Source: Macrostomum lignano
Taxonomy: Eukaryota
Assembly (NCBI GenBank): GCA_002269645.1
Contig: NIVC01001462.1
Span: 1-64,000 of the forward strand
DNA length: 64,000 nucleotides
Direction: 5' to 3'
Shown: in pieces, positions 1,924-55,992 of the stretch
How the letters are laid out: every line of letters begins with the position of its first letter
Position numbering within the stretch: the first letter of the stretch is position 1
The notes under the pieces: model-generated
The model's database searches: none
Seen by the model: the letters and a program-made list of their open reading frames with translations, nothing else
What the model was told of the DNA's origin: nothing
Translations under genes and position numbers: made by a program

Positions 1924-3094
1924 ATGGACCAGCAGCCTCAGCCCATTGAAGAAGTTGCTTGTCCGATGTGCTCTCGGCTGTTCTCAGCCGCCAGATTCGC
2001 TGAGTATTTGCGTCACTGCAACAGTCACAGCATCGGGCAAGAGTCTGAGACTGAAAGTGTGCATGAGCAGGTGGTGGATCCTGGTGAGCAGAGAGATGAG
2101 CGGCCAGTTAATGAGCAACTCGCTGAGCCAGAAGCAGATCGGGGTTCTCAGCAAGTTGGGCATTCGCTGAAGTGCCGGCACTGTGAAAGAGTTTGCCAAC
2201 AGCCTGGAGTTGAGACGGCACGTCAGACGTCATCAGCATCGCGTCATCGACATATCGTTGAGGTGCAATACTTGCGGCAAATGTTTTTCTAGCCGAAGTG
2301 AGTTGTTGATTCATCGCCAAGTCAAGAAGCCGTTCAAGTGCTGCGCTTGCGGCAAGTGCTTATGTAGCCGATATAGTCTCCTCAATCATCACCGAGTGCA
2401 CACAGGCGAAAAGCCTTATAAATGCGACGAGTGTGGAAAATGCTTTGCTGAGCGGAATACTTTATTGGCTCATCGTCGAGTCCACACAGGTGAAAAACCT
2501 TTTAAATGCGGCGAGTGCGAAAAATGCTTTGCTCAGAAGAGTCAATTATTGGCTCATCGCCGAGTCCACACAGGTGAAAAGCGTTATAAATGCGACGATT
2601 GCGGCAAATGTTTTTCTCAGCAGATTTCCTTAAGGACTCATCGCCGAGTCCACACAGGTGAAAAGCCTTTTAAATGCGACGAATGTGACAAATGCTTCGC
2701 TCAGCGGAATGTCCTTTTGGCTCATCGCCGTGGCCACACAGGAGAAAAACCTTATAAATGCGACGTCTGCGGAAAATGCTTTACTGAAAAAAGTAAATTA
2801 TTGGCTCATCACCGTGTCCACACAGGTGAAAAGCCTTTTAAATGCGCCGATTGCGGTAAATGTTTTTCTCATAAGAGTTCCTTAAGGACTCATCGCCATG
2901 TCCACACAGCTGAAAAGCCTTATAAATGCGACGAATGTGGCAGGTGTTTTTCTTTCCGAAGTAACCTTGTGGCTCATCGCCGAGTGCACACTGGCGGCAA
3001 GCAGTTCAAGTGTGACGATTGTGGCAAAAGTTTTCCTGGCCAAAACCGACTTTTGAAGCATCGCCGAGTGCACACCAGTAGCAAGCCAAGTTAG
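1924..3094 (+). pseudogene. C2H2 zinc-finger gene, copy 1; frameshifted near 2188
   Basis: ATG at 1924 matches the start of copy 2. Copy 1 reads TGTGAAAGAGTTTGCC where copy 2 reads TGTGAAAGAGAGTTTACC, a 2-bp loss in an AG run. This splits the N-terminus (ORF 1912-2292) from 9 tandem fingers with TGEKP linkers (ORF 2183-3094). Confidence 0.85.
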
Positions 3095-5978: not shown

Positions 5979-7268
5979 ATGGACCAGCAGCCTCAGCCCA
6001 TTGAAGAAGTTGCTTGTCCGATGTGCTCTCGGCTGTTCTCAGCCGCCAGATTCGCTGAGTATTTGCGTCACTGCAACAGTCACAGCATCGGGCAAGAGTC
6101 TGAGACTGAAAGTGTGCATGAGCAGGTGGTGGATCCTGGTGAGCAGAGAGGTGAGCGGCCAGTTAATGAGCAACTCGCTGAGCCAGAAGCAGATCGGGGT
6201 TCTCAGCAAGTTGGGCATTCGCTGAAGTGCCGGCACTGTGAAAGAGAGTTTACCAACAGCCTGGAGTTGAGACGGCACGTCAGACGTCATCAGCATCGCG
6301 TCATCGACATATCATTGAGGTGCAATACTTGCGGCAAAGGTTTTTCTAGCCGAAGTGAGTTTTTTATTCATCGCCAAGTCAAGAAGCCGTTCAAATGCTG
6401 CGCTTGCGGCAAGTGCTTATGTAGCCGATATAGTCTCCTCAATCATCACCGAGTGCACACAGGTGAAAAACCTTTCAAATGCGACGATTGCGAAAAATGT
6501 TTTGCTGAGCGGGGTGCTTTAATGGCCCATCGCCGTGTGCACACAGGTGAAAAGCCTTATAAATGCAACGATTGCGGCAAATGCTTTGCTCGGCAGAGTA
6601 GCTTATGGACTCATCGCCCTGTCCACACAGGTGAAAAGCGTTATAAATGCGACGATTGCGGCAAATGTTTCTCTCAGCAGATTTCCTTAAGGACTCATCG
6701 TCGTGTCCACACAGGTGAAAAGCCTTTTAAATGCGACGAATGTGACAAATGCTTCGCTCAGCTGAATGTCCTTTTGGCTCATCGCCGTGGCCACACAGGA
6801 GAAAAACCTTATAAATGCGACGTCTGCGGAAAATGCTTTACTGAAAAAAGTGTATTATTGGCTCATCGCCCTGTCCACACAGGTGAAAAGCCTTATAAAT
6901 GCGCCGATTGCGGTAAATGTTTTTCTCATCAGAGTTCCTTAAGGACTCATCGCCGTGTCCACAGAGGTGAAAAGCCTTTTAAATGCGACGACTGCGGCAA
7001 ATGCTTTGCACAAAAGAGTCTATTAAAGGCTCATTTTCGTGTCCACATAGGTGAAAAGCCATTTAAATGCGACGACTGCGGCAAATGTTATGCTCACAAA
7101 AGTACCTTTTTGCGTCATCGTCGTGTCCACACAGGTGAAAAGCCTTTTAAATGCGATGACTGTGGCAGCTGTTTTTCTTGCCCAAGTAACCTTGTGGCTC
7201 ATCGCCGAGTGCACACTGGCGGCAAGCGGTTTAAGTGTGACGATTGTGGCAAAAGTTATTCTCGCTGA
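5979..7268 (+). CDS. C2H2 zinc-finger protein, copy 2 (10 tandem fingers plus one truncated), 429 aa
   Basis: Single ORF with repeated CxxC...HxxxH fingers and TGEKP linkers, and an N-terminal CPMC...HC (UBZ-like) motif. TGA at 7266-7268 replaces the CAA of the other copies in the last finger. Confidence 0.88.
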
Positions 7269-10995: not shown

Positions 10996-22061
<11,066 letters not shown>

Positions 22062-22494
22062 TTGACAGCTTGCAATAAATTGAAATCAACTGCGTTTCTG
22101 GCGCCAATAATATTCGAAGACAGACAAGATATTAGCGTATTCAGACACCCTTCCTGTTTCTGTTTGCTGTGTCTAAACCTGCGGTACCTGGGGTTATCAG
22201 CTGATAATTCTGCAGTCAAGAATTAATATATCATTAATGACAACTGACCAAACGATATTTAACAAAACTTTCTGAATGGTAGAAGAAAAATCTATGCCAA
22301 TTCAATAACTACCTAGGAATAAAATATATTGGCACTAACCTTGAATTGTTAGGCACACTGCGATTGTTTTCTTCTGTTCTGTTTACCATGCTCAATTAAT
22401 AAAACACGGATACCTACACGGACTGATATTGTGGATTGAAAAAAATTTACTTCATTAGTTAATTTGCTAATCTTGAAAATAATATTCATAATCC

Positions 22495-25165: not shown

Positions 25166-26160
25166 ATATTCAATCTACGTTGGGTAACTTAAATTTAGTA
25201 GGGACCTAAATAAGATAACTGGGAACTTAAAGTATTTTTAGGAGGGCGGGGACCCTGCGCTGATTTTTTAGAGTTGTTATTATCTGGTTTTTGGCAGCAA
25301 ATTGAAGAATGGATAATTCAAGTATTCAGTAAGTAGTGAATGAAAGTAGCATGTTGGGAAGTTTTGGAGATAAAATAACCTTGTTAATTTTGCGACTTCT
25401 TTATTGGGGATAATGCAGATAAAATGATTTGGATTATGGAGGAAGTGAAAAAAATTGTTCTGAAAGTGATTGTTTAGCGGCGGTAACGTAAAATCGCTCC
25501 CCGCGGTATCTACTGCCGATAGTCTACAACTCGTGCATGTACGATCGAAGGCTTCTTCTAAAAATCTTCGTCGAAAAATGCGCACGTCGTTATAAGATAA
25601 GCCTATGTCCGGCTTGCCAACAAATATTATGCCGTCGAAATTTACAAAGTCTAAAATTCTCATCGGCTGAAGTTTCGGCGCAGCTGATGCTAAAAATGGC
25701 ATGGCCATCTAAATATAAACATGATTCGTGTTCCCTCTTACGTGAGTAATAAAATTGTAACTGCTTTCCATCCCGTACATTCATGCTGGATGACCAGCAG
25801 GGGTGGGGGTAGCCTTTCTCTTCCCTTTTGGGCGAGAAAATTTCCTTCCCGCGGGCCAGCCCTACTGGCCCGCGTATCCACCCCATATATCCCTTCCTTG
25901 CCTACTCCACTGCAACTGTACAGTCCTTGGTACAATACTATAATTTGGTAAGTACAAGTTGATCGTAGGCAAAATAGAACTTTCTGGTGCCCTCATTCAT
26001 ACCCTCCTTTCACCTCAGAGCAATGGGAGCGCACAAGTCTCATTTTCGACAATGAGGCAGTACCTTCAGCTGTCATATAATATATTCGCTCGTAAAGGAG
26101 GCAAACGCTATGATTTTTTCCTCAGCCAACAAGGAACTAAAACTTGAACGCCAAGTATCC

Positions 26161-29100
26161 ATGACTAGCCTGAACTCGTTAGACCAGCTAGAGTGCCACT
26201 TCACCTGGAAGCCAGATGATAACTGCACAAAATCTAACATCGATGACGTGATCGAAAAGACGGAGAACAAGATAAAACGGGAGCCTCACAAAAAGGCCGC
26301 CTACCTGGCAACCCTGGCGTACCTGTGCACTCGCAAGCGAATCAAAAAGTTCGACTTGGCCAAGCAATATCTCACTGAAGCGCTGGAAATTGATGCACAA
26401 ATACAGCATGACAGTCAGGAAGACTTCACGGTATCAAGCGAGTTCGTAATCAGGGCCGACATGCTGCACCTCAAGCAGCTGAGCAAAGGAAAAAGTCGGC
26501 CACTAACACCGGACGAAATCGAGACAGAAATGCAGAGACTGGAAGAGCTCTGGACTGACCCGAGTAGCAAGGCTCGAGCGTTTGCAGCGAAGGGAGTCAC
26601 CTTCGGTTGCTTCGGTCCAATGAAATACGCCATTGGCGTCAGTGCCTTCGCCGAGGCGTCAAGTATCCTATTGGAGCACAGCAAGGGGTGCAACTTCTAC
26701 TGGCTCTATGGTGAAGCTTATTTAAGAGCTCGTTGCGACAGACAGACGGTGAATAAACCCGCTGACGAAGCTCAGTTGGACTTGTGGAGAAGAGCCGAAG
26801 GCATCGGTGAGAAGAAAGGTCTCACGACGGCCACATTCTACGCAAACTATGTTGAAGCCATTCTGCACAACGAGGATTCCAGTCTGTGCCAAAGCTTGGT
26901 TGAAAAGGCTGCCAATCTTCTATTGGAAATGGCTGAGGAAAAGAAAGAGCTGTCGAAAGTCGCGTACCTTATTTGCCTTAAAGTGTTTCGGTGTCTAAAA
27001 TCTAGTTCAAACAATTTAGAAGTCATCAGAAATCGACTGTTTGAAGACGCTAAAGAAGTGGCAAGCGTATTTGTTGATCCTGGATTCTTCCTTGAGCTTT
27101 CCAAAGAAGCTCTAAGCTCCGATAATAGAGATGAGGCGATTCGGTTGCTTAAAGAGGGCAAGGCAAAGGCAGGTGAGCCTGGTCACATCTGGATTGAGTT
27201 GAAACTCATAGAGCTTCAGCGAGAACAATGGAACAAAGACACAGTCGTAGACGCATACGACTCTCTGAGAGAAACTTTCTCAGTCTACAACAAAAATTTC
27301 GCCACAGTAGAGTTTCACAAGGCCATGTTCCTAATGAAGATTGGCGAAACAAAGGAGGCTGTAGAATCGTGCGTTGCTGCCTTTGACACTGAGGAAACAT
27401 TGGACCATATATGGCCCAACGAGAAGGAAACATTTCTTCGACAACTGAATGAGAGGCATGAAGGCTTTGAAGAGTACCTGGCTTGGTACGCCGACAACAT
27501 CGGGACATTCAAAGTTCAGCTGGATGTCTTAGGCCTCTACAGGACGGCTCTGAGGCGAGACGACAAAAACAATTTTGCTCTAGAGCATCTGGGTTGCTAT
27601 TTTATGAAGAATGGCGAATTTTCTGAGGCCTCTGCAAGTTTTCGGAAACTGTCCAGTGATCACAAAAACAAGCAGGCACTGGTGGCCGAGTCGCTACTCA
27701 GAGACCCCGGCTCCGATTTGATGAAGCTGATGGAGTGTCTTGAATGCGGCTGTTGCGATGCTGCTCCTCGAATTCTTGACATCATTGAGCGTAAAAAGTC
27801 CAATCAGCGAACTGCCGTAAGGGTGATGGCGGATGAGTCAAGTCCAACTCAAGCTAGAAGCGACCCGATGTTCTTCCGCCGAGAGTTGTACGAGCTGTGC
27901 GCTAAGATCGAACTGACTCTGGATGATCCCAGCAGCTTCTCTATTAAAACTGAATCGGATTCGGGCCATTTTGAGTCTGTAAAGTTCAGAATCGCCGAGT
28001 TCTTGGAGCTCAATCAGCTAACGAGCAAAGCGAGCTCGACTCGGTCAGCTGAAGGCGCCGGCGATCGCGGAAACCTCATGAGATCGAATCGATTCCGACT
28101 GACGAAGCTGCAGACGAAGGAGACTGGAAGGGAAGTTCAAGAAATGAACAACATGACCGTCTCGGTGCTGAAGGAGGCAAAGGAGGTCCTCGATCGATCT
28201 CTGGCAGTTCGGCTTAAGGGATCGAGTCGAGAGTTCTCATACCCTCACGCGTTTGGCCAGTTGAAGAAGCAGCTAGAAGGCAACTATAAAAAGCAGTTTA
28301 ACCAGCGGAGTTCCGAAGCAGAGCGGAAGGCATTCGAGCTTGATTCACTGATGAGGGTGCTCAAGGAAAACAGAGATGCTGCATCGCTTGAAAACGTGCG
28401 AAAATGTCTGCTAGAAGAACTGAAACACAAACGTATTGATCCGAACTTTCACCAATCGGGAGACACCAGAGACATCTACAACTTCATGGTGAGTCGTGAG
28501 CACAGAATCCTGTCAAGTGAGGACAGCTGGATTGTCCGCTGGATCTATCTGGTTAACAACGAGAAGCACTCGACTGAGATTCTGGTGGAAGAGCTCAATC
28601 AGCAGCTGAAGTCTGATTGGTCGGGAGGCGCAGAGTGCCAAAGGACGGCGTACGACGTGGCGCATCTGGCAGCGGAGTTCGCTGAGGAGACATGGGCCGT
28701 CTTTTCTGATGGAGTCCGAGCTGGTGAGGCTACTGGAGTCCGAGCTGGTGAGGCTACTGGAGCCCGAGCTGGTGAGGCTACTGGAGTCCGAGCTGGTGAG
28801 GCTACTGGAGTTCGAGCTGATGAGGCTGCTGGAGTCCGAGCTGATGAGGCTGCTGGAGCCCGAGCTGGTGAGGCTACTGGAGCCCGAGCTGGTGAGGCTA
28901 CTGGAGTCCGAGCTGATGAGGCTGCTGGAGTCCGAGCTGATGAGGCTGCTGGAGCCCGAGCTGGTGAGGCTACTGGAGTCCGAGCTGATGAGGCTACTGG
29001 AGCCCGAGCTGGTGAGGCTGCTGGAGCCCGAGCTGGTGAGGCTACTGGAGTCCGAGCTGGTGAGGCTACTGGAGTCCGAGCTGATGAGGCTGCTGGAGTC

Positions 29101-29448
29101 CGAGCTGATGAGGCTGCTGGAGTCCGAGCTGATGAGGCTGCTGGAGCCCGAGCTGGTGAGGCTACTGGAGTCCGAGCTGATGAGGCTACTGGAGTCCGAG
29201 CTGATGAGGCTGCTGGAGTCCGAGCTGATGAGGCTGCTGGAGTTGGAGTCCGAGCTGATGAGGCTGCTGGAGTCCGAGCTGATGAGGCTACTGGAGTCCG
29301 AGCTGGTGAGGCTACTGGAGCCCGAGCTGGTGAGGCTACTGGAGTCCGAGCTAATGAGGCTGCTGAAGTCCGAGCTGATGAGGCTGCTGGAGTCCGAGCT
29401 GATGAGGCTACTGGCCTGGTTCATACCAAAAATATAATCGTTAAGTAA
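26161..29448 (+). CDS. IFIT-like tetratricopeptide-repeat protein with C-terminal helical (possibly HEPN-like) domain and GVRA[G/D]EA[T/A] repeat tail, 1095 aa
   Basis: N-terminus SLDQLECHFTW matches the IFIT hallmark (IFIT5 LELECHFTW). YLATLAYL resembles LYNLLAYV, and AAKGVTFGCFGPMKYAIGVSAFAEA resembles CEKGWALLKFGGKYYQKAKAAFEKA. Probable 5'UTR intron 25948-26125. ATG 26161 taken as the start. Confidence 0.82.
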   Translation: MTSLNSLDQLECHFTWKPDDNCTKSNIDDVIEKTENKIKREPHKKAAYLATLAYLCTRKRIKKFDLAKQYLTEALEIDAQIQHDSQEDFTVSSEFVIRADMLHLKQLSKGKSRPLTPDEIETEMQRLEELWTDPSSKARAFAAKGVTFGCFGPMKYAIGVSAFAEASSILLEHSKGCNFYWLYGEAYLRARCDRQTVNKPADEAQLDLWRRAEGIGEKKGLTTATFYANYVEAILHNEDSSLCQSLVEKAANLLLEMAEEKKELSKVAYLICLKVFRCLKSSSNNLEVIRNRLFEDAKEVASVFVDPGFFLELSKEALSSDNRDEAIRLLKEGKAKAGEPGHIWIELKLIELQREQWNKDTVVDAYDSLRETFSVYNKNFATVEFHKAMFLMKIGETKEAVESCVAAFDTEETLDHIWPNEKETFLRQLNERHEGFEEYLAWYADNIGTFKVQLDVLGLYRTALRRDDKNNFALEHLGCYFMKNGEFSEASASFRKLSSDHKNKQALVAESLLRDPGSDLMKLMECLECGCCDAAPRILDIIERKKSNQRTAVRVMADESSPTQARSDPMFFRRELYELCAKIELTLDDPSSFSIKTESDSGHFESVKFRIAEFLELNQLTSKASSTRSAEGAGDRGNLMRSNRFRLTKLQTKETGREVQEMNNMTVSVLKEAKEVLDRSLAVRLKGSSREFSYPHAFGQLKKQLEGNYKKQFNQRSSEAERKAFELDSLMRVLKENRDAASLENVRKCLLEELKHKRIDPNFHQSGDTRDIYNFMVSREHRILSSEDSWIVRWIYLVNNEKHSTEILVEELNQQLKSDWSGGAECQRTAYDVAHLAAEFAEETWAVFSDGVRAGEATGVRAGEATGARAGEATGVRAGEATGVRADEAAGVRADEAAGARAGEATGARAGEATGVRADEAAGVRADEAAGARAGEATGVRADEATGARAGEAAGARAGEATGVRAGEATGVRADEAAGVRADEAAGVRADEAAGARAGEATGVRADEATGVRADEAAGVRADEAAGVGVRADEAAGVRADEATGVRAGEATGARAGEATGVRANEAAEVRADEAAGVRADEATGLVHTKNIIVK
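28709..29413. repeat. 24-bp tandem repeat (GGAGTCCGAGCTGGTGAGGCTACT)n inside the IFIT-like ORF
   Basis: About 29 units encoding an 8-aa repeat. Confidence 0.95.
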
Positions 29449-41828: not shown

Positions 41829-44483
41829 TCACAGAATCGAGCACTCTGACCCAAACTTGATTAGATATCTCGGGGTGGCTTGCTCCGCTCTGTACACGAT
41901 GTACTCGTCATTCAACACTCCTCCTTTTTTCTTCGAATTTCTTCTGGCAAACACGGAATCGTATCCAGCTGTTCTAACCTGCTCTAAGGTAAGACTGGTC
42001 TTTGGAGCATCGCACACCATTGTTTTACCCAGCAAGACATCGCAGAGCAGCAGCGATTTAATACCTGTTCCCCTGCAATACTGAGCGCTCTTGGTGCTAT
42101 CGGTTGCGAAGTATATGCCAGCACCGAACATTCCGCTATTGCCAACCTTGAATCCATTCTGAATGATCATTTCAGCATTTTTTCTTGTAGTTCCGTGGAA
42201 AAGCAACTCCGGCACACAGTCCTTCTTGTGCATTTCGTTGTATACATTGAAAAGTTTCTTATCCAAGACTGGATTTTTTATTTTCTCAATGGAACGAATT
42301 TCCAACTTAATATTGTGCTCCTTTAATGCGTATCGCAGAACTCGGTCGCTTATCTTATAGTACTCGACCGCAGTGTCTTCATTGTCAGCAGTGACTGGTG
42401 TACGTCTGATTCTGTCACCATCCTGACAAAGTTTGTTTGCCTGCACCTGGCTGGCCAGAGGCCAACAGCTGGAACAGAACTGGTCACTTATTCGACGCAA
42501 AGATGATTCGCGGTCGAGCCGTTCGGTGTGCCCGCAGCGAAACGTTCTTAACTCGTCGTTCTAAAAATGAATTGTTGGCAACTGCAAATCCTTTCAAATT
42601 GAGCATGCGCTCGTATCTTTTATTAACAAATCCCTTTGGAAAATGTTTACAGATCACCTTACCCACAGGTGCACAGCCATGTCCTGAAGACTGTTAAACT
42701 CTTCAATCAAGATGCCTAACTGGTCCTTGACATCCGTGCGTAAAACTGAATTTCCTCGATTTTCCTCTATCAGTTTGTAACCCAGTGTGCGGACATTTTC
42801 CACTGTCCACGATCTGCTATCGATCTCTTTGCGTAGCTTTTGAAGGATCCTTTGTCTACGAACCTCCTTATGCTCTGGTGAAGGCTGAGAATCGTCTATC
42901 TGACAGTGTCTTGTCATGTTGTAATGAAGGGCAGATATCCAGCATCGACAGTCGCGAAATTTCTGCCAATACTGCTGCAGAAGTGATTGATCAGGGGTGC
43001 ATAGCTTTGCGGGACCAATTGACGCTGCTTCGGCCAATTGATTGTAACCAGCGCCCTGCAGACAGTTTCGTGAATGCTTGAATGCAAAAACTCTGTCCAG
43101 TTAAAATAATAGCAATAAAAATATATCAGCTGGTCAGCCCCATAAGAGAAGACAGCGAGAGACAAGCGGTCAGAATTCCAACGATAGAGATTAGATAATC
43201 CTGAGATTAAGCTAACCCGCCACCAACAATCCATGAGAACTAGCTAAACAAACCAGCTCTTTCGAAATCGGATTTCCGACTTGAAATGGCACTGGACTTA
43301 CCTGCCAACAAGTGTTTTTGATATTCAATCTCGAATTCGTAGCCAATAAAAGGGACACTGCTGAGACTGGATCGCATTGACATGCAGGAAGCGAGAACTT
43401 TTGTAGGGGAGGGCGCTTTTATGCTGACAAGCCTCTATACACAGCTGAGTGTACATACTATTACATTCTACTGAATTCAAGGAAGTTCAGGAACTATTCG
43501 GAAACCCAGGTAGTCCAAAAGTGTTGAGAGGCTCCGGAAGACCTGGTATGATATTGCCTCTGCTTAGGTCTGCGGGCACCCTCCATACGAGGGCCCACCT
43601 TGCTTCCTAAGATCCCAGCTTTTGTCAGCAGACGTATTTTCGAAGCGTCCGAAAGTGTACCGAAATCATGGGGCCACCCATCCTGCTCGTCAATAGAACC
43701 CACTTTCGCACTGGCAGAAGCTCCCTGCGGCCAAATTCTGGGGTTGAGAATACCAAACTAGAGACCTGTCTTATTATACAGCTAGCATACAGCCTTTCCC
43801 GGTCCGCTGTTACCTATTCTCGTAGTGAGCTACCTCAAGACAAATTTTCCAGCGGTCAGAGACAGACTTCGGAAAGTATGCAGACCGGATCACCATTGCG
43901 GGTAAGTGCTCAACCGTGATATTCGCTAGTAGGATATGAAGACAAACAAGTCATGGTAATGCATTTATGCTATATTAACAAAATTAAAACTACTCACCAT
44001 TTTTTGTTGAACAACCTCGTTCAAGTCGGACATTTTTTGGCCGATGTCACGAATTTGCTTTCTGATTTCCGCGCACAAATCTTTGTTCCCGAAATTTTCT
44101 TCCGCGAGCTTACCTCCCATTGACTGAACTTTAATTACTAGACTTTGCCTTTTTTTAAGCTCGTGCATAAGTTTCATTTGTTGCTCCTGCGTCTCCAGGG
44201 GAATCGACTGGTCCAAAACACCGGACAGGGTCCGCTCAATCCAGCATTGGCTATCATGTAGAAAGTCAAAAAACGAATGCTGGTCCGGTTCCGACTGAAG
44301 CTCTTCAACTAATTTGGCCAGCTTGAAAACTGATTCCAACATATTGTTCCTTCTCCGCCGTGGTTGGCTAGGTCCTTCGCTAAATCGTCTGCGACGCAAC
44401 GATCCACCTCTGTCTCGTTGGAAGTTCGAATGCGGGCTGCTCAATTGCAGCCCTCTGGTGCTATGGAACTCGCACGGTCTACG
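41829..44483 (-). CDS. PARP-type ADP-ribosyltransferase with intact H-Y-E triad and two N-terminal spectrin-like repeats; 3+ exons
   Basis: Exons 44483-43998 (TTTGTAG|CGT ... ATG|GTGAGT), 43055-42663 (CTGCAG|GGC ... TGG|GTAAGG) and 42560-41829 (TTTTTAG|AAC), all phase 0. LFHGT, FGAGIYFA and DEYIVY motifs present. The start is uncertain: ATG 44342 or an upstream exon. Confidence 0.75.
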
Positions 44484-46739: not shown

Positions 46740-47380
46740 AGACGAAAGCCAGTTTGGGTGTTGTCCATGGGGAGGTTCGGTGCTGCCGACTTCCTGTGGA
46801 TGAACGACAGTGCGCTGAAGCTTACATGTATTTGCTTGCTCCTGGCGGCTTGCTCCTGAAGCCTCGCTCCTAGAGGAAGGAAGGCGGTGAACTTCTACGG
46901 TCGTCCAACTTATGGGGACGGCCACCGCTACTTCGGCACTTCGGAGTTTTTGGCCTCGACGATGACCTCCTCGCCTTCCTGTCAACAATTAACTGTTATT
47001 AAGGCGCCCAGCGCCAGATCAATAGGCTGGTCTTGTGGTCAACACACTTAATACCGAGGTTCTCACCGTGTCGGCTGATTTCCCAGAGTACCTGTACGGT
47101 ATACATGTATGCCTCAGCGCAGAAGACCATGCGCTCGCCCGCTGCCAGCGGTTCACCTACCTTGGCGGTCTGGTGCTCCACATAGAGGAGGACATCTGGC
47201 GGCGCATAGGACTCGCCTGGGCGGCCTACTGATCTACCCACCGTCCTTCTCAGTCCCAACCTCTACAGGACGTCCCGCTATTCACCTTGCAGGGTATATT
47301 TAAATGGGGCCAAGCGGGATTCAGTCTATGTGTGGGCAGCCTGCTTTGAGATACCGGGACGCCCGATTCAACGTTCTCGC
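46740..47380 (+). mobile_element. Degenerate RTE-clade LINE fragment
   Basis: DDDLLAFLST...GAQRQINRLV, RCQRFTYLGGLV...RRIGLAWAA and QDVPLFTLQG align with the RTE ORF at 62630-63490. The left boundary is approximate. Confidence 0.75.
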
Positions 47381-47384
47381 CAAC

Positions 47385-49600
47385 GTCATGTCCTGGATTG
47401 CCTTCACTTTGGCTGGGTCCGGCTTGAGCTGATCTCCTTCCAATAAGTAGCCTAGAAACTTGATCGAAGTCTTGCGGAATTCACTTTTTGCCGTGTTGAT
47501 CTTCAATCCTTGCTGGTTTAGTCGATGCAATACTTCCGTCTCACGAACTGCCAATTGTTCTACGCCTTTGCCGCATATCAATATGTCGTCTACGTAGGCA
47601 ATGACGCCAGGAATTCCTTGTAGGACTTGGCTAATGTACCGCTGGAAGATCGCAGGTGCTGTTTTCACTCCGAACGGAAGCTTGTTGAAAGCGAACATCC
47701 CAAATGGTGTTGAAATTACTGTCAGCTCTTTGGAAGCTTCATCTAGTGGGATCTGGTGATAAGCTTTCTCTAGGTCCAGACGAGTGTATATCCGGCTGCC
47801 AGCAGCAGTTGCAATCACTTCGTCAGGTGCAGGCATCGGATATGAATCGTTGATAAGATGAGAATTGATTGTCACCTTGTAGTCGACGCAAAGTCTGAGC
47901 TTTCCAGAAGGTTTCTTGACCACGACAATTGGTGAGGCCCATTCACTGAACTTGACGGGCTTGATGGTGTCTTCTTCAAGCAACCGATCGATTTCATCCT
48001 TGACTCCCTGTCTGAGTGCGAAGGGTAGCGGCCTGGGTTTGCAATGAATTGGAGTGGTTCCTTCCTTGATCTTAAGAGTTACTGGTGGAAATTCGCATGA
48101 CTGGGTTGCCGATGTGCAGCTGTTGTCTACAGCGTTTAGCGTGAAATTGAGCTTGTCTTGGCCAACCAGAACAAAGTTCCTCTGCGATTCCACAATGAAG
48201 AATGTGATTGGAATGAACTCGTCATTGTACTCCAACTCAGTGTCGTGTGTTCCAAAGACCTTCATCTGCGTATCAGCGTATGTTGTCAGAACAGTGTCTG
48301 TAGGTGTCAGCTTTGGACAACCCAATCGTTTCCAGATCGTTTTTGACATTACCGAAACTCCTGCCCCAGTATCGATTTGTGCGTTCACGCTAAGCATCGA
48401 CCCGCTCGTGTGTCTGAGCCTAACAGGCACGGTGTAGCTATCAACGGGATGTCGAATGTGAAAACAATCCTCCTGTTCAGCTTCGCTTGCATCTACAAAG
48501 CTTGTGGTCCTTGGCCACACTGCAGCTCGCCTAAATTGACCAGATGCTGACGGGCTTTTGAACGATTTTCGGCCTTTGCCAAAACCAGTTGATTTCGTTT
48601 TGCAAACTGTTGCGAAGTGGTTTTGCATGCCACATTTGTTGCACGTTTTTCCTTTCGCAGGACACCCTCCATTGGAGCCATGCATTGTGCCACATCTGCC
48701 ACACTTGGAGCTTGTAGAGTGGGAGCCTCTGGCCACCGATGCTGAAATTTTCATTACTTCAGAAGACTGCGGCTGACTGGTGCAACCCTTTAGTATTTGC
48801 GTTTGTGATAGGTTCTGGTGCGCCTCAGCGATGTTGATAGCTGTCTCAAACGTGAGAGTGCTGAAGTCCTGTTCCAATAACTTGCTGATGGCCACCTTGT
48901 CATTCAAACCGAATACGAGCTGATCTCTCAGTCTCTCATCTCTGGATAGGCCAAACTGACGCTTGTCTGCCTGCATGCAGAGTTGCTGTGCATACTCACG
49001 AATGCTCATTGATGCCGTGCGAGTGATATGCTGGAAATTGAATCTCTCAGCCATGACGAACGTCTTTGGTTCCAGGATGCTGGCCAGTAGTTTGGTCAGT
49101 TCATCGAAGCTCTTTTCTCCCGGCTTCTTGGGAGCGGCTCGATCTGCCAATGCGTCGTACAGCTTGGTGCTGAGCTTCATCAGCAGCAGCTTGTTTTTCG
49201 TGTCGTCCTGCCAGCCGTTGAGTTCGCTGCACAGTGTGAATCGGTCCAACCACCTCTGGAAGTTCGAACTTTCATCGAGTTTTTCGATGTCAACTTGCTG
49301 TCCTCTCGATACTTGTGCGCTTGGGTTCTGCGCTGTCGCTGTTGCCGACTTTGTCGCTTGGACTGATTTCGACGAGATAGCAAGCGGTGGTGCTTTGTCG
49401 CTCGAAACCGTTCTACCAACTCCTTTAGTTGGCGATGCTGGCGTACTTCCAGGCAATTTCGTAGCCTATGCTTGCCGACGCCACTGTTGTGCTTTTGGCT
49501 TTAGCCTTTAGCAATTAGCGGTCTGTTGACCTCTGACGCGTCTATCATTTATTTCATAACTCAATAGCATGGTTCAATTCATCAACGCAGTCGCGTAACA
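47385..49600 (-). mobile_element. Ty3/Gypsy (Mag-like) LTR retrotransposon, 3'-truncated: 5' LTR, PBS, gag-protease-RT
   Basis: 116-bp LTR 49600-49485 (TGTT...AACA) and PBS TGGCGTCGGC from 49483. Single ORF with two Cys/His knuckles (CGRC...H...CPAKGKTCNKC...HF..VC), protease IDTGA and RT YVDDILI. No RNase H, integrase or 3' LTR; no ATG at the ORF start. Confidence 0.9.
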
Positions 49601-50171
49601 AAAATGTCTATGGCTAAGCCATCAACCCACAACAATCAGTTCATCAATTTTTACGAGCTACTCAAGATGCCAAGTGCTGATCGCCAATCAACTCTGTAGC
49701 ACATGCCACAATACTGCAATTCTTTTCAGTTGCTCTGTGACAACCAATGAAAACGTCCTTTTAACACAGACATTATTATAGTTGTTGCTCTTCAGGCTGC
49801 CATAAATGCCATAAAGCGAAAGAGATGGAAAGCAGTCGGAGAGTACCCAGCTATGCAGGCAGTTTGTCTATTGCAGTGGTTTCTTTCGGTAGCGCAATGT
49901 TCTTTGAATTTGTTTTGATTCATTTACCTGGCTCATAAATTGAGTCTTATTCAGCTTTTAGAGCCCGTGACAATAGTGAATCTAACCCTGACAATTTCCT
50001 CTTTATCGTTGGCGTCTCAAGGCTAGGTAGCATTGAGCAGTCGAGGCGCTGTAAGAGAAAAGGTTACCATAAAGAATGCCTAAAGCATTCAGACCTTCTT
50101 CGACCACGTTTTCGGGGCTCTGTTTATTGGAGGTTAGGAAACACGAGCTTCCAGCCTCAGTCATGCGGGTC

Positions 50172-50178
50172 TATAAAT
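50172..50178 (+). promoter_or_regulatory. TATA box upstream of the peptide precursor gene
   Basis: TATAAAT about 100 bp upstream of ATG 50278. Confidence 0.5.
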
Positions 50179-50277
50179 TCAAGCCCCCTTGAGCTCCCAA
50201 CAGCTCAAGACCCAAGTCGAGAATCGGCTCTGCAAATCGAATCTCTCTGAGCTCAAAATTCAACAACAGCAGCAGTC

Positions 50278-50535
50278 ATGAAGTGGCAGTTCGCCCTCGG
50301 TCTCCTCCTCTGCGTGGCGCTGGCGGTCTACGCCAACCCGGCTGAGCGCGAAGACAACGACGACCTGGACGAGGGGCCCAACGACGACCTGGCCGACATG
50401 GACCAACCGGAGCTGGATGATTCCAACGAAGACGCCCATCCGGAATTGAAGTGGTTTAGCAGGTGGTTCCGGATTACGTATCGCAGGCGTGGGGGCGAGC
50501 GCCGCTACCTTCGTTCCTACTTCCGCTTGGGCTGA
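50278..50535 (+). CDS. Secreted peptide precursor: signal peptide + acidic propiece + cationic aromatic C-terminal peptide ending in Gly (arminin-like AMP candidate), 85 aa
   Basis: MKWQFALGLLLCVALAVYA signal, D/E-rich middle, then LKWFSRWFRITYRRRGGERRYLRSYFRLG. GC-rich codon-like composition against AT-rich flanks. Confidence 0.8.
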   Translation: MKWQFALGLLLCVALAVYANPAEREDNDDLDEGPNDDLADMDQPELDDSNEDAHPELKWFSRWFRITYRRRGGERRYLRSYFRLG

Positions 50536-50869
50536 ACAAATCCGAGCGTCTTCTGACTGATCGCATTGGAAATTGATAGCTAAATCAGCTGAACACTGCT
50601 TTACTTGTAAAAATTGCAGACCAAAGTGACTGCTCAACATCGCGGACATTCACAAATATACTACTAGGCTTATTCTTATATTATATTATTATAAACCAAA
50701 TCTTCGATTTTAATTGTTGGAATAGATTCACTTAATTGTTGATGATTTTACGTTTTCAAGGATTTGTAATGGAAATTCATCGAAAAGCCAGCTGGGATAC
50801 CGAATGCCAGAATAACAAGCAGCGATCGAGAAGTTGAATCGGTTATACATGTGAGATAGATTCTGTAGT

Positions 50870-51035
50870 AGGTGAGATACGCTCGTATATTCGGTAATAG
50901 GTGAGATAGATTCGGCAAGGGTGAGAAAGATTCGTTAATTGGTGAGATAGATTCGGTAATGGGTGAGATAGATTCGGTAATGGGTGAGATAGACTCGGTA
51001 ATGGGTGGGATAGATTAGATAATGGGTGAGATTAC
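50870..51035. repeat. 21-bp minisatellite (GGTGAGATAGATTCGGTAATG)n
   Basis: Degenerate tandem copies. Confidence 0.85.
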
Positions 51036-51379
51036 TAGCATATACTGTCTTACATAACAAACTTGAAGCCACGAAGAACATTAATACACGATTGATGGTC
51101 GCAAGCCCTTGGCAGTGAGAATTTTGAGCAAGTAAATTTGAAATAAAGTAAGAACACCTTATGCAGAGTACGGTTGGGTGGGCCGAAAATGACCCCCATT
51201 TAAACCATTTCTTGGGTTTTTTCGAGTATTCTGTCTAGACGGCTTTTATTCTACCCTCTCTTTTAGAGCTTTTCTCATCTGCTTAGACTTAGAATGAAAT
51301 AAATGAAAAAGTAATTGTAGCTCAGGCTAGTGGCATATGCCGTCTTAAGGACCAAACAGGACTGACATAGAAAACTAAT

Positions 51380-52096
51380 ATGAGTATGTCAGAGTGACCA
51401 TATGAATCAGAAAATTGGCATGTCAAATAGTGACCCAGTGTGTCAGAAAATGATTTTGCATGTCAAAGTGACCCAGTGTGTCAGTCAGGAGGCACGTTAG
51501 AGAGTGACACAATGAGTCAGAGAGTGATTTGGCATGTCAAAAAGTGATACAGTGTGTCATAAAATGATTTGGAACGTCAAAGAGTGACCCAGTGTGCCAG
51601 GGAGTGATTTTTCACGTCAAAGAGGGACCCTGTGTGTCAGGGAGTGATTTAGCACGTCAGAGAGTGACCCTGTGTGTCAGGGAGTGATTTTGCACGTCAG
51701 AGAGTGACCCAGTGTGCCAGGGAGTGATTTTGCACGTCAGAGAGTGACACAATGAGTCAGGGAGTAATTTTGCATGTCAGAGAGTGACACAATGAGTCAG
51801 AAAGTGATTTGGCACGTCAGAAAGTGATCTGGTGTGTCAGGGAGTGATTTTGCATGTTAGAGAGTGACACAATGAGTCAGAAAGTGATTTGGCACGTCAG
51901 AGAGTGATCTGGTGTGTCAGGGAGTGATTTTGCATGTTAGAGAGTGACACAATGAGTCAGAAAGTGATTTGGCAAGTCAGAGAGTGACCCGGTGTTTCAA
52001 GGAGTGATTTAGCACGTCAGAGAGTGACAGAATGAGTCAGAGAGTGATTTGGCACGTCAGAGAGTGACCCGGTGTGTCAGGGAGTGATTTGGCATA
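51380..52096. repeat. 40-bp minisatellite (GGAGTGATTTTGCACGTCAGAGAGTGACCCTGTGTGTCAG-like)
   Basis: GGAGTGATTT recurs at 51601, 51641, 51681 and 51721. Confidence 0.9.
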
Positions 52097-54400
52097 AAAT
52101 TATTATGTAAAGAGCAGAGATTTGTCAAGCTTCAGTTACATAAAATGGGTTTCTATGAGACGTCGTTTAAAGGGATGACAAAAAACAAAAGTATAATATT
52201 TATCCTGCACGTGATCAACCCATATCTCAGCAAAAATATATAGTAGCATTGAACACTAACACAAGAGTAGTAGAAGCAAGCTACACTTAATTTTCTTAGA
52301 AATGAAATGAAGCCGAAAATGAATGCACACTGGTACATTTGTCGTATCGCTAGTACATTTAGGGGCCTCTCTCCGAAAACGGACCGTTGAGTTTGCACCG
52401 AGCATCATTCGGCCCTGCGGTCTAACGTGCTGAAGCAGAAGACCGCTCGTGAGCGTCTCTACCAGCTGTAGGGCAGCATCTGTCGCGTCATCACACAGGT
52501 GCATACCCATCAACCCCACTTCGAGGGGCTGAACGCTATCCTAAATTCGCCTCCGCTTCATAAGTTTATTAGGGCCAATGCTATGATATCGGTGATAAAA
52601 CGTTAAATGACACACTTTCTGGCTTTTATGCCAATGAAAACTCTAATCCCGCATATGGATTTCGTCCTTCGCGACCTTACCAACATCCACATCGACCCGT
52701 ACATTGTGAATAGTCGCCTCCCCGCTCTCAACATCAGGAGGGACTTCCAGACCGCACCTCAGACAGCAGCACCTCACTGGATGTCGGTGCGTCACTGACG
52801 GCTCATTGTTTAACGGCCGCGCTGGAGCGGGTATCGCCATCTTCCACCATCGAGGGTAAGATGCTCTTCCAGGAAAGTCTGCACCTCAGTGAGAACATCC
52901 CGGTTTTCCCAGCCGAAACATGAGTCATTGAGCAGTGTGCCCAGCACCTACTCTAGCTAGGCGAACATCAAGAAATTCAATATTTATTTGTTACACTGAT
53001 AGCCAAATTTCCACTGCTACAGTATCTCAATACCACCGCAGTGTGCAGTCTCTCTCAGTCCTTAACAGGATTATAATCATATGGACAACCAGTCACAGCA
53101 ATATCCAGCTGCGTAACGTGCTGTGGATTCATCTCTCCTAAGGAGAGTAGCAACCCAGACAGAAACCACCGTATGATGAGGCTACCCATACGTAGGACGC
53201 AAATCTCCCACAATGCCACATCAGGTGGCTGCACCAGCAACACCAGCTGCATCGGAACAGTTGCACCGACTACAGGCAGGTGTGCATGGTCCTAAAATGG
53301 TTATGGATTCTTCCAGACATATCTCGTTGTAAACCGGTTGCCCTTCCACTTTTTCTTTTTTCTTTTTTTCTTTTCTTCTTTTTTCATTTTTCATTTTTGT
53401 CTTATTACCGAGAGTAGTACACTGAGCATGAGATCACGATAAAAATACAATTCGAAAGTAAAAAAGTAGCAATGCAATTTAAAAATAAACCTCTAACCAT
53501 TAAGTTGAGTACGTCAGGTAGCATTGTCGAGAGTAAATGTGCAGAAATACAAAATTGTGCTTTATTTAGAATCCGAAACTTTCATACTTGGGTTAAATAA
53601 ATGCCTGACGGTCTTTAGTCGAATGGTTGTGACAAAGTTGTGAAATAGTTGTGGAATAGTTGTCTATTAGCTGTGATGTCCTTGTTTTGAATTAAAAATG
53701 ATCCCGGCTCTAATGTCAGAGCTAAAGGTTAAAAAACTACAACGGACGGCCATCGAAAAAGTAGCTATCTACTTTTAAAAGTAGAAAACATTAAATATAG
53801 AAATATAAATCATAGAAAATTTTGTTTAAAAATTGCTAATGAAAAGTGTAATATACGAGCTACGAGCTTATATACCCAATTCACTTAACTTCTCCTAATA
53901 CTCTGTCGCAAATATCCTTCCAATCGCGATTCTAACATTTCTTCAAACTGGAACTACTAATAACTAACAGTGGTCTAAAAGTAGTCTTGCTTGTCTGCCC
54001 TATAGAATTTTTTTTATTATTTATGTTATTTATATAACAAACATGCCTGCATTAAAAAGCTAATAAAAATTTGCGCATTTCTTAATACCGACATGAGTGC
54101 AGGTATAAGTTTTTTAATGGTGGGATTCCAGTACCCATATATTTGAAGCAAACGTTTGGAGCAAATGAATTATTTTTTCAGAGTGGCTAAACACTATATA
54201 AAGAGCAATAAATATCCGTTTTTCACGAAAATTAAAAATCTTCACAAAATGATGAGGTCTGATGACACAAAACAAACAAACCAAAGAACTATACCAATGA
54301 TAGTCTTCCGAGCAAACATCTAGTTAGTACATGTAATAATATATTAGGAAACATTTTTTGTAAAAATTGGGGAAAGCTTTCGCTCCGTACCGTCAGTCCC

Positions 54401-55402
54401 TCACTGTCCGATGCCCCTCCAAAAAGCCGGGATCGTCACGAGACAGACGATCACCAGAAAGGGTTGAATGATCCAACCGATACTCAATAGCCAATCCAGT
54501 AAGAAAATAAATATAAGTCCTATAGCTGCTGCACAAGCCAGGACAAAGATGAAGATAAGCCAACAAAGTTCTGATTTAAAAATATCTAGAATCCTCTCTC
54601 GAACGTTTTCCAGCTTCAGAGCGACAAAAACTGCAAATGGCACGGACAGCACCGCCATAAGCAAAAACCTCACAGCCGCGTAGAAATGGTCACTCAGTCG
54701 GCCAAAATCATTATTCGTCACTTCAAACGTCACCAGGTACCTTGGAGTGGCCTGCTCGTGTCGGTAAACAACGCATGTGCCGAAGCCGGCAAGGCTGTTG
54801 TTTGCTAGCACCGAGTCGCAGCCCTCGTCTTGAATCTTCGAGAGGTTGAGCCCCGGATCGGGCTGGTCGCAGAGTTTCTCTTTGCCCAGGAGCACTTCGC
54901 CCACCAGAAGTGTCTGGACGCCACTCTGAGTGCTGTAGCTGGGTCGCTTGCTGTTGTTCTCAGTTGAGAAGTAAATTCCCCAACCGTAGGGACCTTCAGT
55001 TGCGGTGAAACCTTCATTGAAGACTTTCTCTCTGTTATTCAGGCTGGCATCGTGAATGAGCAACCGTGGCTCCGAGTCGACAAGCAGGAGTTCGCGAGCC
55101 GCGTGAAATCGGGCATCGAGCACTGGCTGCTCGATTCGCTCGATGCTTTTGATCAAAATGGATTTCAGTGGATTTAGAGGCCTCGCGTACAAGTACAGAG
55201 TGACCAGTTCGCTGACGGTTGCGTACTCTGTGGCGGTCTCCGGCTCGTCTTTTAATAGCGGCTTTCGATTGACGGCACTAAAATAAGGCTTTGAAGTCCG
55301 TGCTGTACATGTCGAACTTGTTGAACATGTTGAACGTGTTGTATCCGTTGTTTTCACCGACTTCGCCGTCAGAGATTTCCGCCATTTTTTGAGCTGTTTC
55401 AT
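54401..55402 (-). CDS. PARP-type ADP-ribosyltransferase-like protein, degenerate (catalytic Glu absent), C-terminal multi-pass membrane anchor
   Basis: LLIHDA, GPYGWGIYF, LLVGEVLLGK and CVVYRHEQATPRYLVTF motifs, followed by about 3 hydrophobic helices. ATG 55402 is in frame; the true start is uncertain. Confidence 0.78.
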   Translation of the reverse strand: MKQLKKWRKSLTAKSVKTTDTTRSTCSTSSTCTARTSKPYFSAVNRKPLLKDEPETATEYATVSELVTLYLYARPLNPLKSILIKSIERIEQPVLDARFHAARELLLVDSEPRLLIHDASLNNREKVFNEGFTATEGPYGWGIYFSTENNSKRPSYSTQSGVQTLLVGEVLLGKEKLCDQPDPGLNLSKIQDEGCDSVLANNSLAGFGTCVVYRHEQATPRYLVTFEVTNNDFGRLSDHFYAAVRFLLMAVLSVPFAVFVALKLENVRERILDIFKSELCWLIFIFVLACAAAIGLIFIFLLDWLLSIGWIIQPFLVIVCLVTIPAFWRGIGQ

Positions 55403-55992
55403 TCTTGTAGGCTTAAAAAGTTTTCTGAAATTTGTGTCTTTCAAAGGCTTGCTGGTCTTTTTAGTGCATTAATGCGCTTTCTGAGGTGTAGCTCAGGTGT
55501 TGAGGTTGCTCGTTTCTTTGCGATGCGACTACTCATATTTTATAGAGTGATAGAGAGTACTCAGCTACAGTATCTGTCTTGCCGTTGCACAAATTTACTT
55601 TGCTGACCATTGGGCTGTGTGTCCAAACAGCTAAATGTACAATATGAAAAATGGGCAGAAAATAAGAGCTGCGCTCGTGTGAAGTTAACTATATTTAGCA
55701 ACATAGAAAATTTGTGAAGGTATCACGGTATCAAAATATAGGGTCCACACGAATTTTCCAACGCTAATTGTCTTACTAGCTATGGTTAATCCAAAAAGTC
55801 TTAAAAATCCAGCAACCTTAGTCAAGAAGTGCAGTTTCAAGCACCGACCTACGGCGCTGTTCATTTGTTTCTTCGCATAGAAGCTGATCCAGATTATGCC
55901 AAGTTTCAGATTTAGTGGGCAAGTTGTTTCCTGGTTTTGCTGGTTGACGCTATAGTTGCTAATTAACTACTAACTAGCTGGAATCCTTTTTG

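Follow-up and report, generated by a model that had tools for sequence, protein, structure and literature searches.

We analyzed a stretch of 64,000 nucleotides from the genome of the flatworm Macrostomum lignano (the window; positions 1-64000 of contig NIVC01001462.1, assembly GCA_002269645.1), which carries at 50278-50535, on the forward strand, a gene for a predicted secreted peptide precursor. The gene is an intronless open reading frame (ORF), and its translation is an 85-residue protein, MKWQFALGLLLCVALAVYANPAEREDNDDLDEGPNDDLADMDQPELDDSNEDAHPELKWFSRWFRITYRRRGGERRYLRSYFRLG. A first-pass annotation had described it as a candidate arminin-like antimicrobial peptide (AMP) precursor, in which a signal peptide and an acidic propiece precede a Gly-terminated peptide rich in basic and aromatic residues; this layout is confirmed, and it recurs across a family of paralogues. 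The signal peptide, MKWQFALGLLLCVALAVYA, occupies 50278-50334 (+), with cleavage predicted between A19 and N20 by the -3/-1 rule; residues 3-19 were modeled as a helix by AlphaFold, with a predicted local distance difference test (pLDDT) value of about 80. It is followed by the acidic propiece N20-K58 (NPAEREDNDDLDEGPNDDLADMDQPELDDSNEDAHPELK; 50335-50451, +), which has a net charge of -15 (about -16 for N20-E56) and ends at a junction Lys, K58. The predicted mature peptide, W59-L84 (WFSRWFRITYRRRGGERRYLRSYFRL; 50452-50529, +), is 26 residues long, with nine Arg, no Lys and a net charge of +8; the monoisotopic mass of its amidated form is 3581.94. Among the family peptides it is listed as WFSRWFRITYRRRGGERRYLRSYFRLG, and its boundary is predicted from the junction seen in the family. 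The precursor closes with Gly85, a putative amide donor in view of the G/GK endings of the family, and a TGA stop codon (50530-50535, +). The composition given earlier for the last 29 residues holds (nine Arg, one Lys, one Glu, eight aromatic residues, namely two Trp, three Phe and three Tyr, no Cys, and Gly at the end). The start of the mature peptide had been placed at L57, and this must be shifted, because the family alignment locates the junction Lys at K58, with W59 as the likely first residue (26 residues plus Gly).

Judged from the sequence around it, the gene is small and TATA-driven. A TATA box, TATAAAT, is read directly at 50172-50178 (+), 106 nt upstream of the ATG. From its position, the 5' untranslated region (5'UTR) is predicted to extend from approximately 50200, about 30 nt past the box, to 50277 (+). 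The closest paralogue, at locus L001, shares the sequence GCGGGTCTATAAAT at the TATA box and, in the upstream alignment, the CAGCAGCAG tract in which the 5'UTR ends. The probable 3'UTR is 50536-50700 (+), with an uncertain 3' end: no canonical AATAAA was found after the stop codon, and the variants AATATA and TATAAA start 120 and 155 nt past it. No RNA family was found by Rfam within 48000-53000.

Three contigs of the assembly each carry a gene for this same 85-residue protein. These genome copies share 98.3-98.8% identity across a stretch of more than 13 kb (in the window, the locus, L002, is 40278-60535) and have the same PARP-domain neighbors; therefore, they are duplicated or allelic copies. 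Across 50197-50537, which covers the predicted 5'UTR and the coding sequence, there are no nucleotide differences among the three, whereas the flanks differ by about 1-4% (5 differences in 520 bp upstream and about 13 in 330 bp downstream), and the copies diverge again from 50538. The ORF is thus a real gene, beyond chance, because it is invariant in three copies, has a paralogue that shares the TATA box, 5'UTR, signal peptide and propiece, and belongs to a set of at least 28 related clusters. The gene models of the assembly were built on RNA-seq and transcriptome assemblies (PMC5730564), and the protein is present in NCBI/UniRef; transcription of the gene is inferred from these two facts. An antisense ORF at 50260-50649 was dismissed, since the signal-peptide codons change synonymously only, which favors the forward frame.

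Relatives of the protein were sought in several ways. The word-indexed search gave one diverged relative, P0002. Of the 1.84 billion representative proteins covered by the profile search, five matched at E<=0.001, namely the window protein, three other M. lignano relatives and a 4433-residue ENA protein whose match is apparently one of low complexity. After two profile iterations there were 28 clusters (90% identity clustering, E<=1). All named family matches are entries of the type "hypothetical protein BOX15_Mlig..." from M. lignano, and among the named matches in the 1.84 billion representatives there was no relative from outside this species. Pfam gave no match for the window protein or for seven relatives, except for a borderline match between PF22991 and the acidic helix that is duplicated in P0016, which we judged to be chance. 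Sequence and profile searches of the PDB returned only a signal-peptide-like match to SEL1L and chance matches. A tblastn search of the 64-kb window revealed no second family member, and the gene is a singleton there. It should be noted that one family member came from a 929-bp genomic contig (L005:1-929, Logan assembly, run SRR31628392); it encodes a Pro/Arg-repeat peptide, has its own CATAAAT box and GAAAAACGTG element, and either comes from a different Macrostomum species or strain or is an M. lignano copy left out of the assembly. The gene identifiers Mlig025063, 024774, 026085, 023933, 020420, 008283 and 022283, and the peptide strings, were absent from the searchable literature, and none of the searchable papers that name M. 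lignano together with antimicrobial peptides describes such a family. Judging from these searches, the family of at least 28 clusters is apparently undescribed and known only from M. lignano.

The members share an N-terminal cassette and differ in nearly everything that follows it. The family genes are intronless, and their products are almost Cys-free. The signal peptide is near-invariant, M[KR]WQ[LFI]ALGLLLC...A, with the core MKWQ[LF]ALGLLLC, and the propieces are acidic and 28-48 residues long. In alignments A4 and A6, the column of the junction Lys (K58 in the window protein) does not vary. In the window subfamily, the junction is a single K (PELK, PEEK, PAEK, AQQK, VEQK); in other members it is KK or KKK, and K58 aligns with the second K. 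Past the junction, only the cationic and hydrophobic character is common, and the mature length ranges from 6 to 78 residues. The mature parts fall into W/R-rich peptides (WFVRWRRRRWRFRFFRG, also given as WFVRWRRRRWRFRFFR), amphipathic-helix peptides (WRRRRRFRWRKAIRVAGKVAKAVL, KWRIKSACKIFRRLLHLARKCYAKKG and KWRIKSACKIFRRLLHLARKCYAKK), Pro/Arg repeats (FLRVRLPRVRMPRVRLPRVRLPRLRVRFRWSKK; a sequence starting FLRVRLPRVRMPRVRLPRVRL...), longer Arg-rich peptides with a GK end (WLLRRIRIRWRRVLRVASRVYRIYRYLPIGK, FRIRIRWGRVARNVLRLLGK), an Arg/Tyr/His-rich type (LFFRRRRRRHYFVYHSRRRYY...HHVHIVAYHG; the Tyr/His/Arg-rich member has 47 residues), a poly-Arg type, an (RRYY)n type with a Gly-terminated tail of 78 residues, and very short alternating peptides (FVRVRVRLG, IFRVRVRIG, FVRVHVRFG, FIHIHFG, GFHVHFHG, FHLHLPGK).

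Two regularities are common to these dissimilar peptides. First, the C-terminus is G or GK in 21 of the 26 distinct peptides of the family (and KK in one), and the chance of at least six of ten independent subfamilies ending in Gly is 2e-5; at the level of sequence, such endings are a classical signature of peptidylglycine amidation. Second, Arg and Lys are segregated. The mature interiors contain 169 Arg versus 13 Lys, with no Lys in 22 of the 26 peptides and all 13 interior Lys confined to four members, whereas the propieces contain 8 Arg versus 15 Lys (Fisher p = 5e-10 for the comparison with mature interiors). The first residue past the junction is aromatic or hydrophobic/aliphatic in 24 of the 26 peptides. 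Given the Arg-only interiors and the junction Lys, we infer that Lys is reserved for the junction and for C-terminal trimming sites, and that the processing protease is Lys-directed and spares Arg runs. If so, the product of the window gene would be the intact W59-L84 amide and not fragments cut at RRR or RR.

Sequence conservation in the family falls from the signal peptide towards the mature part. Mean pairwise identity is 0.61 in the signal peptide, 0.35 in the propiece and 0.20 in the mature part. When the window gene is compared with its closest paralogue, non-synonymous (dN) and synonymous (dS) divergence is 0 and 0.16 in the signal codons and 0.30 and 0.64 in the propiece, and the mature parts are unalignable; similarity at the DNA level spans only 50165 (TATA box) to 50416 (propiece). 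We also compared close paralogues in two arrays. The proportions of synonymous (pS) and non-synonymous (pN) differences were both about six times higher in mature than in prepro codons: pS 0.52 and pN 0.31 versus 0.087 and 0.055 in array one, and pS 0.26 and pN 0.12 versus 0.036 and 0.022 in array two. A conserved prepro region with a hypervariable mature part is thus found in the identity gradient, in the unrelated chemotypes and in the sixfold rise of both pS and pN. As read from these alignments, the pattern is one of "conserved cassette, hypermutable end"; a pN/pS ratio of about 0.5-0.6 in both regions does not demonstrate positive selection on the mature part.

Several members lie close together in the genome. 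Five family genes, in both orientations, are found within 20 kb of contig NIVC01000619.1 (L013:1-20261), with the peptides FVRVHVRF, FVRLRVRI, IFRVRVRI and, twice, FIHIHF; on the same contig, 125 kb away, there are two GFHVHFH genes (L014:6958-10234). Locus L001:719-13922 has three to four members in 14 kb. One has 148 residues and is of the (RRYY)n type, another is the paralogue closest to the window gene, and one is broken, with "MKWQFALEV" at 12108 and the remainder at 13731-13922. Two tandem members are located at L006:7191-10195, and two inverted members at L007:9964-14554. The annotated P0002, of 96 residues, lacks nine residues (one YYRRR-type unit) that are present in the 105-residue ORF at L001:10001-10318, an ORF identical to P0008 of another contig; therefore, the number of Arg/Tyr repeats varies between copies or transcripts.

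The upstream sequence is shared within the family, as well. A TATAAAT/CATAAAT-type box is located 65-124 nt upstream of the ATG in 17 of the 19 family genes examined, and 14 of the 19 have a perfect GAAA[AC]ACGTG element 22-23 nt upstream of the (T/C)ATAAAT box (e.g., at L006:9891, at L008:5889 and, several times, at L013). There were 11 strict matches to this element in 249 kb versus about one expected; one strict match, inside a retroelement ORF of the window at 48651 (-), is probably chance. The element holds a CACGTG E-box, and this sequence suggests a common regulator of the basic helix-loop-helix type. The window gene has a degenerate version, GGAAACACGAG, at 50137-50147 (+), 34 nt upstream of the TATA box; it is identical across the three genome copies, and its one mismatch (CACGAG) destroys the CACGTG palindrome. 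A scan for bacterial-type promoters and terminators was set aside, since the locus is eukaryotic.

Structural indications for the mature peptides were sought as well. The helical hydrophobic moment of the window 26-mer was 0.49, compared to 0.27 +/- 0.14 for shuffled sequences (p 0.08), and that of E74-L84 was 0.78 (p 0.06); the (VR)n members have a beta-strand periodicity (p about 0.04). The AlphaFold model, built on a nine-sequence family alignment, has a mean pLDDT of 60.6, with helices at 3-19 and 56-71 (ELKWFSRWFRITYRRR) and coil otherwise. It is thus plausible, though weakly supported, that the window peptide starts with an amphipathic helix and has a GG hinge after it.

The arrangement of these precursors has counterparts in other animals. 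Frog preprodermaseptins and conotoxins are large families in which the mature domain is hypervariable and the secretory cassette before it, made up of signal peptide and acidic propiece, is conserved. The flatworm family resembles them in the raised synonymous and non-synonymous substitution of the mature part, in the basic site and in the G/GK signals. It is, however, non-homologous; frogs use KR and the flatworm family uses K, KK or KKK, conotoxins are Cys-rich whereas the flatworm family is almost Cys-free, and the flatworm genes are intronless with a fixed E-box-TATA module. Melittin and other aculeate venom precursors have the same order of parts: the signal peptide and acidic propiece come before a C-terminal peptide that is cationic, amphipathic and amidated. 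In these precursors, however, the propiece consists of consecutive X-Pro/X-Ala dipeptides, which a dipeptidyl peptidase removes stepwise. X-A/X-P dipeptides had been noted for the window propiece, and this point is not supported: only 4 of its 19 in-phase dipeptides have Ala or Pro as the second residue. Therefore, the melittin-type mechanism does not apply, and dipeptidyl processing is rejected.

The comparison to Hydra arminins, which gave the gene its initial name, holds as an analogy only. Arminins have a signal peptide, an anionic N-terminal part and a cationic, Arg/Trp-bearing, amidated C-terminal peptide (for arminin 1a, KPWRFRRAIRRVRWRKVAPYIPFVVKTVGKK-NH2; PMC6217004). Hydra AMP families are described as bipartite in charge, present as many paralogues in clusters and restricted taxonomically (PMC10945409), and the flatworm family is likewise clustered, rich in paralogues and taxonomically restricted. 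The window precursor fits the bipartite plan, with -15 in the propiece, +8 in the mature part and a terminal Gly for predicted amidation. Arminins are, however, confined to the genus Hydra (PMC10945409), which belongs to another phylum, and the flatworm family differs in the much broader range of mature lengths (6-78 residues), the Lys junction and the Arg-only interiors. Homology was rejected: BLASTP of the arminin 1a C-terminal peptide against P0001, P0021 and P0009 gave either nothing or chance matches of 4-6 residues. Thus, "arminin-like" is appropriate for the architecture and charge layout and inappropriate for ancestry. The broader proposal of an AMP precursor loses its dipeptide argument and has its architectural argument strengthened by the conserved prepro region and hypervariable ends of the family.

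Taking these observations together, we tentatively favor, at somewhat less than even confidence, a membrane-active secreted host-defense peptide, either antimicrobial or antipredator, as the best-fitting role by analogy. This role is ranked first because a conserved cassette is joined to hypervariable cationic ends, the paralogues are arrayed, the family is restricted to one lineage, and the chemotypes are AMP-like, a combination known from host-defense peptide families, with Hydra AMPs, frog preprodermaseptins, aculeate venom peptides and conotoxins as the models; the mature parts match the known AMP classes of W/R-rich peptides, amphipathic helices, Pro/Arg repeats and alternating beta-strands. 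Under this proposal, the precursor would enter the secretory pathway, and its signal peptide would be cut at A19|N20. The anionic propiece would neutralize or chaperone the cationic end until cleavage; a Lys-directed endoprotease would then cut after K58, and the terminal Gly85 would give rise to the C-terminal amide, so that the 26-residue WFSRWFRITYRRRGGERRYLRSYFRL-NH2 is released. This peptide would have a net charge of about +9 and may bind anionic membranes via Arg and insert via Trp, Phe and Tyr. With slightly more reserve, we propose that the family is a superfamily in which an E-box-TATA promoter, a MKWQLALGLLLC signal, an acidic propiece and a Lys-specific site are joined to hypervariable, Arg-only amidated warheads. 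It may be the first gene-encoded antimicrobial or host-defense arsenal in Platyhelminthes, and it would include ultra-short (VR)n and (HV)n beta-strand amides and a Lys-specific convertase that spares poly-Arg. In the searchable literature, the immune effectors of free-living flatworms are termed poorly defined, and no report of a classical gene-encoded cationic AMP family was found; recent texts on planarian immunity likewise call effector mechanisms poorly defined.

A number of observations weigh against a host-defense role. The pN/pS ratio, from only 8-10 codons, is 0.47-0.59 in the mature part versus 0.60-0.64 in the prepro part, and gene conversion limited to the 5' cassette could be the source of the same gradient. 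The amphipathicity of the window peptide is marginal and non-significant (p 0.06-0.08), the AlphaFold model has low confidence (pLDDT of about 55-61 for helix 56-71), and the promoter element of the window gene is both degenerate and mis-spaced. The charges of propiece and mature part are unbalanced across members. Many family peptides have 6-10 residues, a length that is typical among neuropeptides but low for an AMP of the classical kind, and the 78-residue (RRYY)n member resembles a material or condensate-forming protein more than an AMP. Neither expression nor peptidomic nor activity data on any member were found in the searchable literature and five supplements. In particular, there were no expression data for the family in the supplements of PMC7336406, PMC5816591 and PMC12732829 or of the single-nucleus atlas preprint, and the sole supplement match, Mlig024774.g6, stands beside a PRP19 homologue and is uninformative on the family.

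The short members raise a second reading, which we regard as possible though unlikely, namely that the genes encode neuropeptide or peptide-hormone precursors and that the window gene gives YLRSYFRL-NH2 after cleavage at RRR and RR. Such a precursor would be cut at basic sites and amidated in neurons or secretory cells, and its short product would signal through a receptor. I/L-amide neuropeptides are known in flatworms. The short members have a prohormone-type layout (KK or KKK, a peptide of 6-10 residues, G or GK, stop) and neuropeptide-like sequences, such as FVRVHVRF-G, IFRVRVRI-G, GFHVHFH-G and FHLHLP-GK; the window precursor itself has the processing signature in its K58 junction and Gly85-stop. 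The flatworm npp neuropeptide precursors are similar in having a signal peptide, a basic site, a short peptide and a Gly amidation signal. They also have -R[IL]-amide ends, comparable to -FRL-G in the window protein and -VRL-G and -VRI-G in its relatives, and YLRSYFRL(G) resembles FVRVRVRL(G) in R3, R7, L8 and the -RL-amide end. A -VRI-amide end exists in the flatworm neuropeptide GFVRIamide (PMC13026224), and some Hydra neuropeptides double as AMPs (PMC10945409). Conversely, neuropeptide families are normally conserved phylum-wide, whereas no homologue of this family was found outside M. lignano among the 1.84 billion representatives, and a bioactive motif conserved among paralogues or orthologues was not observed, with only the -R[LI]-G ending recurring in a subset. 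The family comprises at least 28 hypervariable clusters; its genes stand in tandem arrays, are almost identical in signal peptide and promoter, and encode one peptide per precursor. It differs from the npp pattern in paralogue number and variability, as well as in its long Arg-rich members, whose ends of 17-78 residues would be shredded by Arg-pair cleavage. The first-pass annotation had itself offered the YLRSYFRL-amide as an alternative. The short members with KK/KKK and G/GK lend it some support, but the excess of 169 Arg over 13 Lys is a sign of Lys-specific cleavage; the Arg runs would then stay uncut and the window 26-mer intact.

The longest members suggest a different use of the same design. 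A structural or material secretory peptide, of mucus, rhabdite-like granules, adhesive or eggshell, that is kept soluble until secretion by the acidic propiece is an improbable reading, and its assembly by cation-pi contacts, beta-sheet fibrils or polyanion complexing is improbable to the same degree. Strictly alternating hydrophobic/basic peptides are classic self-assembling sequences, and a beta periodicity was measured in the alternating members; the 78-residue (RRYY)n and the 47-residue Tyr/His/Arg-rich members, and the presence of opposite charges in one precursor, are also consistent with such a function. However, most members have 6-11 residues and amidation signals, the window peptide lacks repeats and contains only three Tyr, a structural component would not usually be hypervariable, and family searches surfaced no similarity to known adhesive or gland proteins of M. 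lignano.

A reproductive (seminal-fluid or prostate) peptide, or an antipredator toxin, aimed at mates or other animals would agree equally well with a fast-diverging, species-restricted and tandemly expanded secreted family, since conotoxins and seminal-fluid proteins evolve in a similar mode, and reproduction-related genes are reported to evolve rapidly in Macrostomum (PMC7336406). Against this, none of the six searched family identifiers occurs in the supplements of the Macrostomum reproduction-gene study, and there is no Cys framework typical of toxins; we consider this reading to have a small probability. A silent or decaying copy next to a retroelement is highly improbable: the mismatched E-box-like element (CACGAG) with non-standard spacing, the lack of a canonical poly(A) signal, the gag-pol ORF 0.8 kb upstream and the broken member of the L001 cluster would agree with it, but the reading frame is unbroken and retains the signal peptide, the junction Lys and the terminal Gly, the three copies have no differences over the 5'UTR and coding sequence despite variable flanks, and the gene is annotated from transcript evidence.

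The window holds a number of other features. The ORF upstream, at 47321-49456 (-), encodes 711 residues with gag-like, aspartyl-protease and reverse-transcriptase domains and is a fragment of a long terminal repeat (LTR) retroelement; the other two genome copies have about 3.3 kb of extra sequence at window position 47366/47385. The peptide gene lies between two genes, at 41829-44342 (-) and 54401-55444 (-), whose products have PARP catalytic (ADP-ribosyltransferase) domains, and this arrangement is kept in all three copies. Just 3' of the gene there is a 21-bp tandem repeat (50889-51032, 6.9 copies), followed by a 40/80-bp tandem repeat (51415-52095, about 17 and 8.6 copies); there are indels in and around the 21-bp array among the three copies, whose alignment extends to about 51135. 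The block 19600-22100 has an extreme strand asymmetry (GC skew -0.84, AT skew +0.37), with long overlapping ORFs on both strands and no Pfam match, and is probably a low-complexity or satellite-like repeat. The ORFs at 2183-3094 (+), 5979-7268 (+), 12963-14294 (+) and 26110-29448 (+) are ordinary neighboring genes or exons; they comprise two multi-C2H2 zinc-finger proteins, a fragment of a class-I aminoacyl-tRNA synthetase and a 1112-residue ORF with weak TPR matches.

M. lignano is amenable to transgenesis and has a single-nucleus atlas, and, if the host-defense role is true, the family would fill a gap in a genetically tractable model. It would also be a further independent case of evolution by a conserved cassette plus a hypermutable warhead, and it would provide a natural library of very short Arg/His-hydrophobic amides and W/R-rich peptides for antimicrobial testing. 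From the rule of Arg inside and Lys at the junction, a processing protease of unusual, Lys-specific type is predicted. Should the peptides be neuropeptides instead, the family would represent an unusually explosive, species-restricted neuropeptide radiation.

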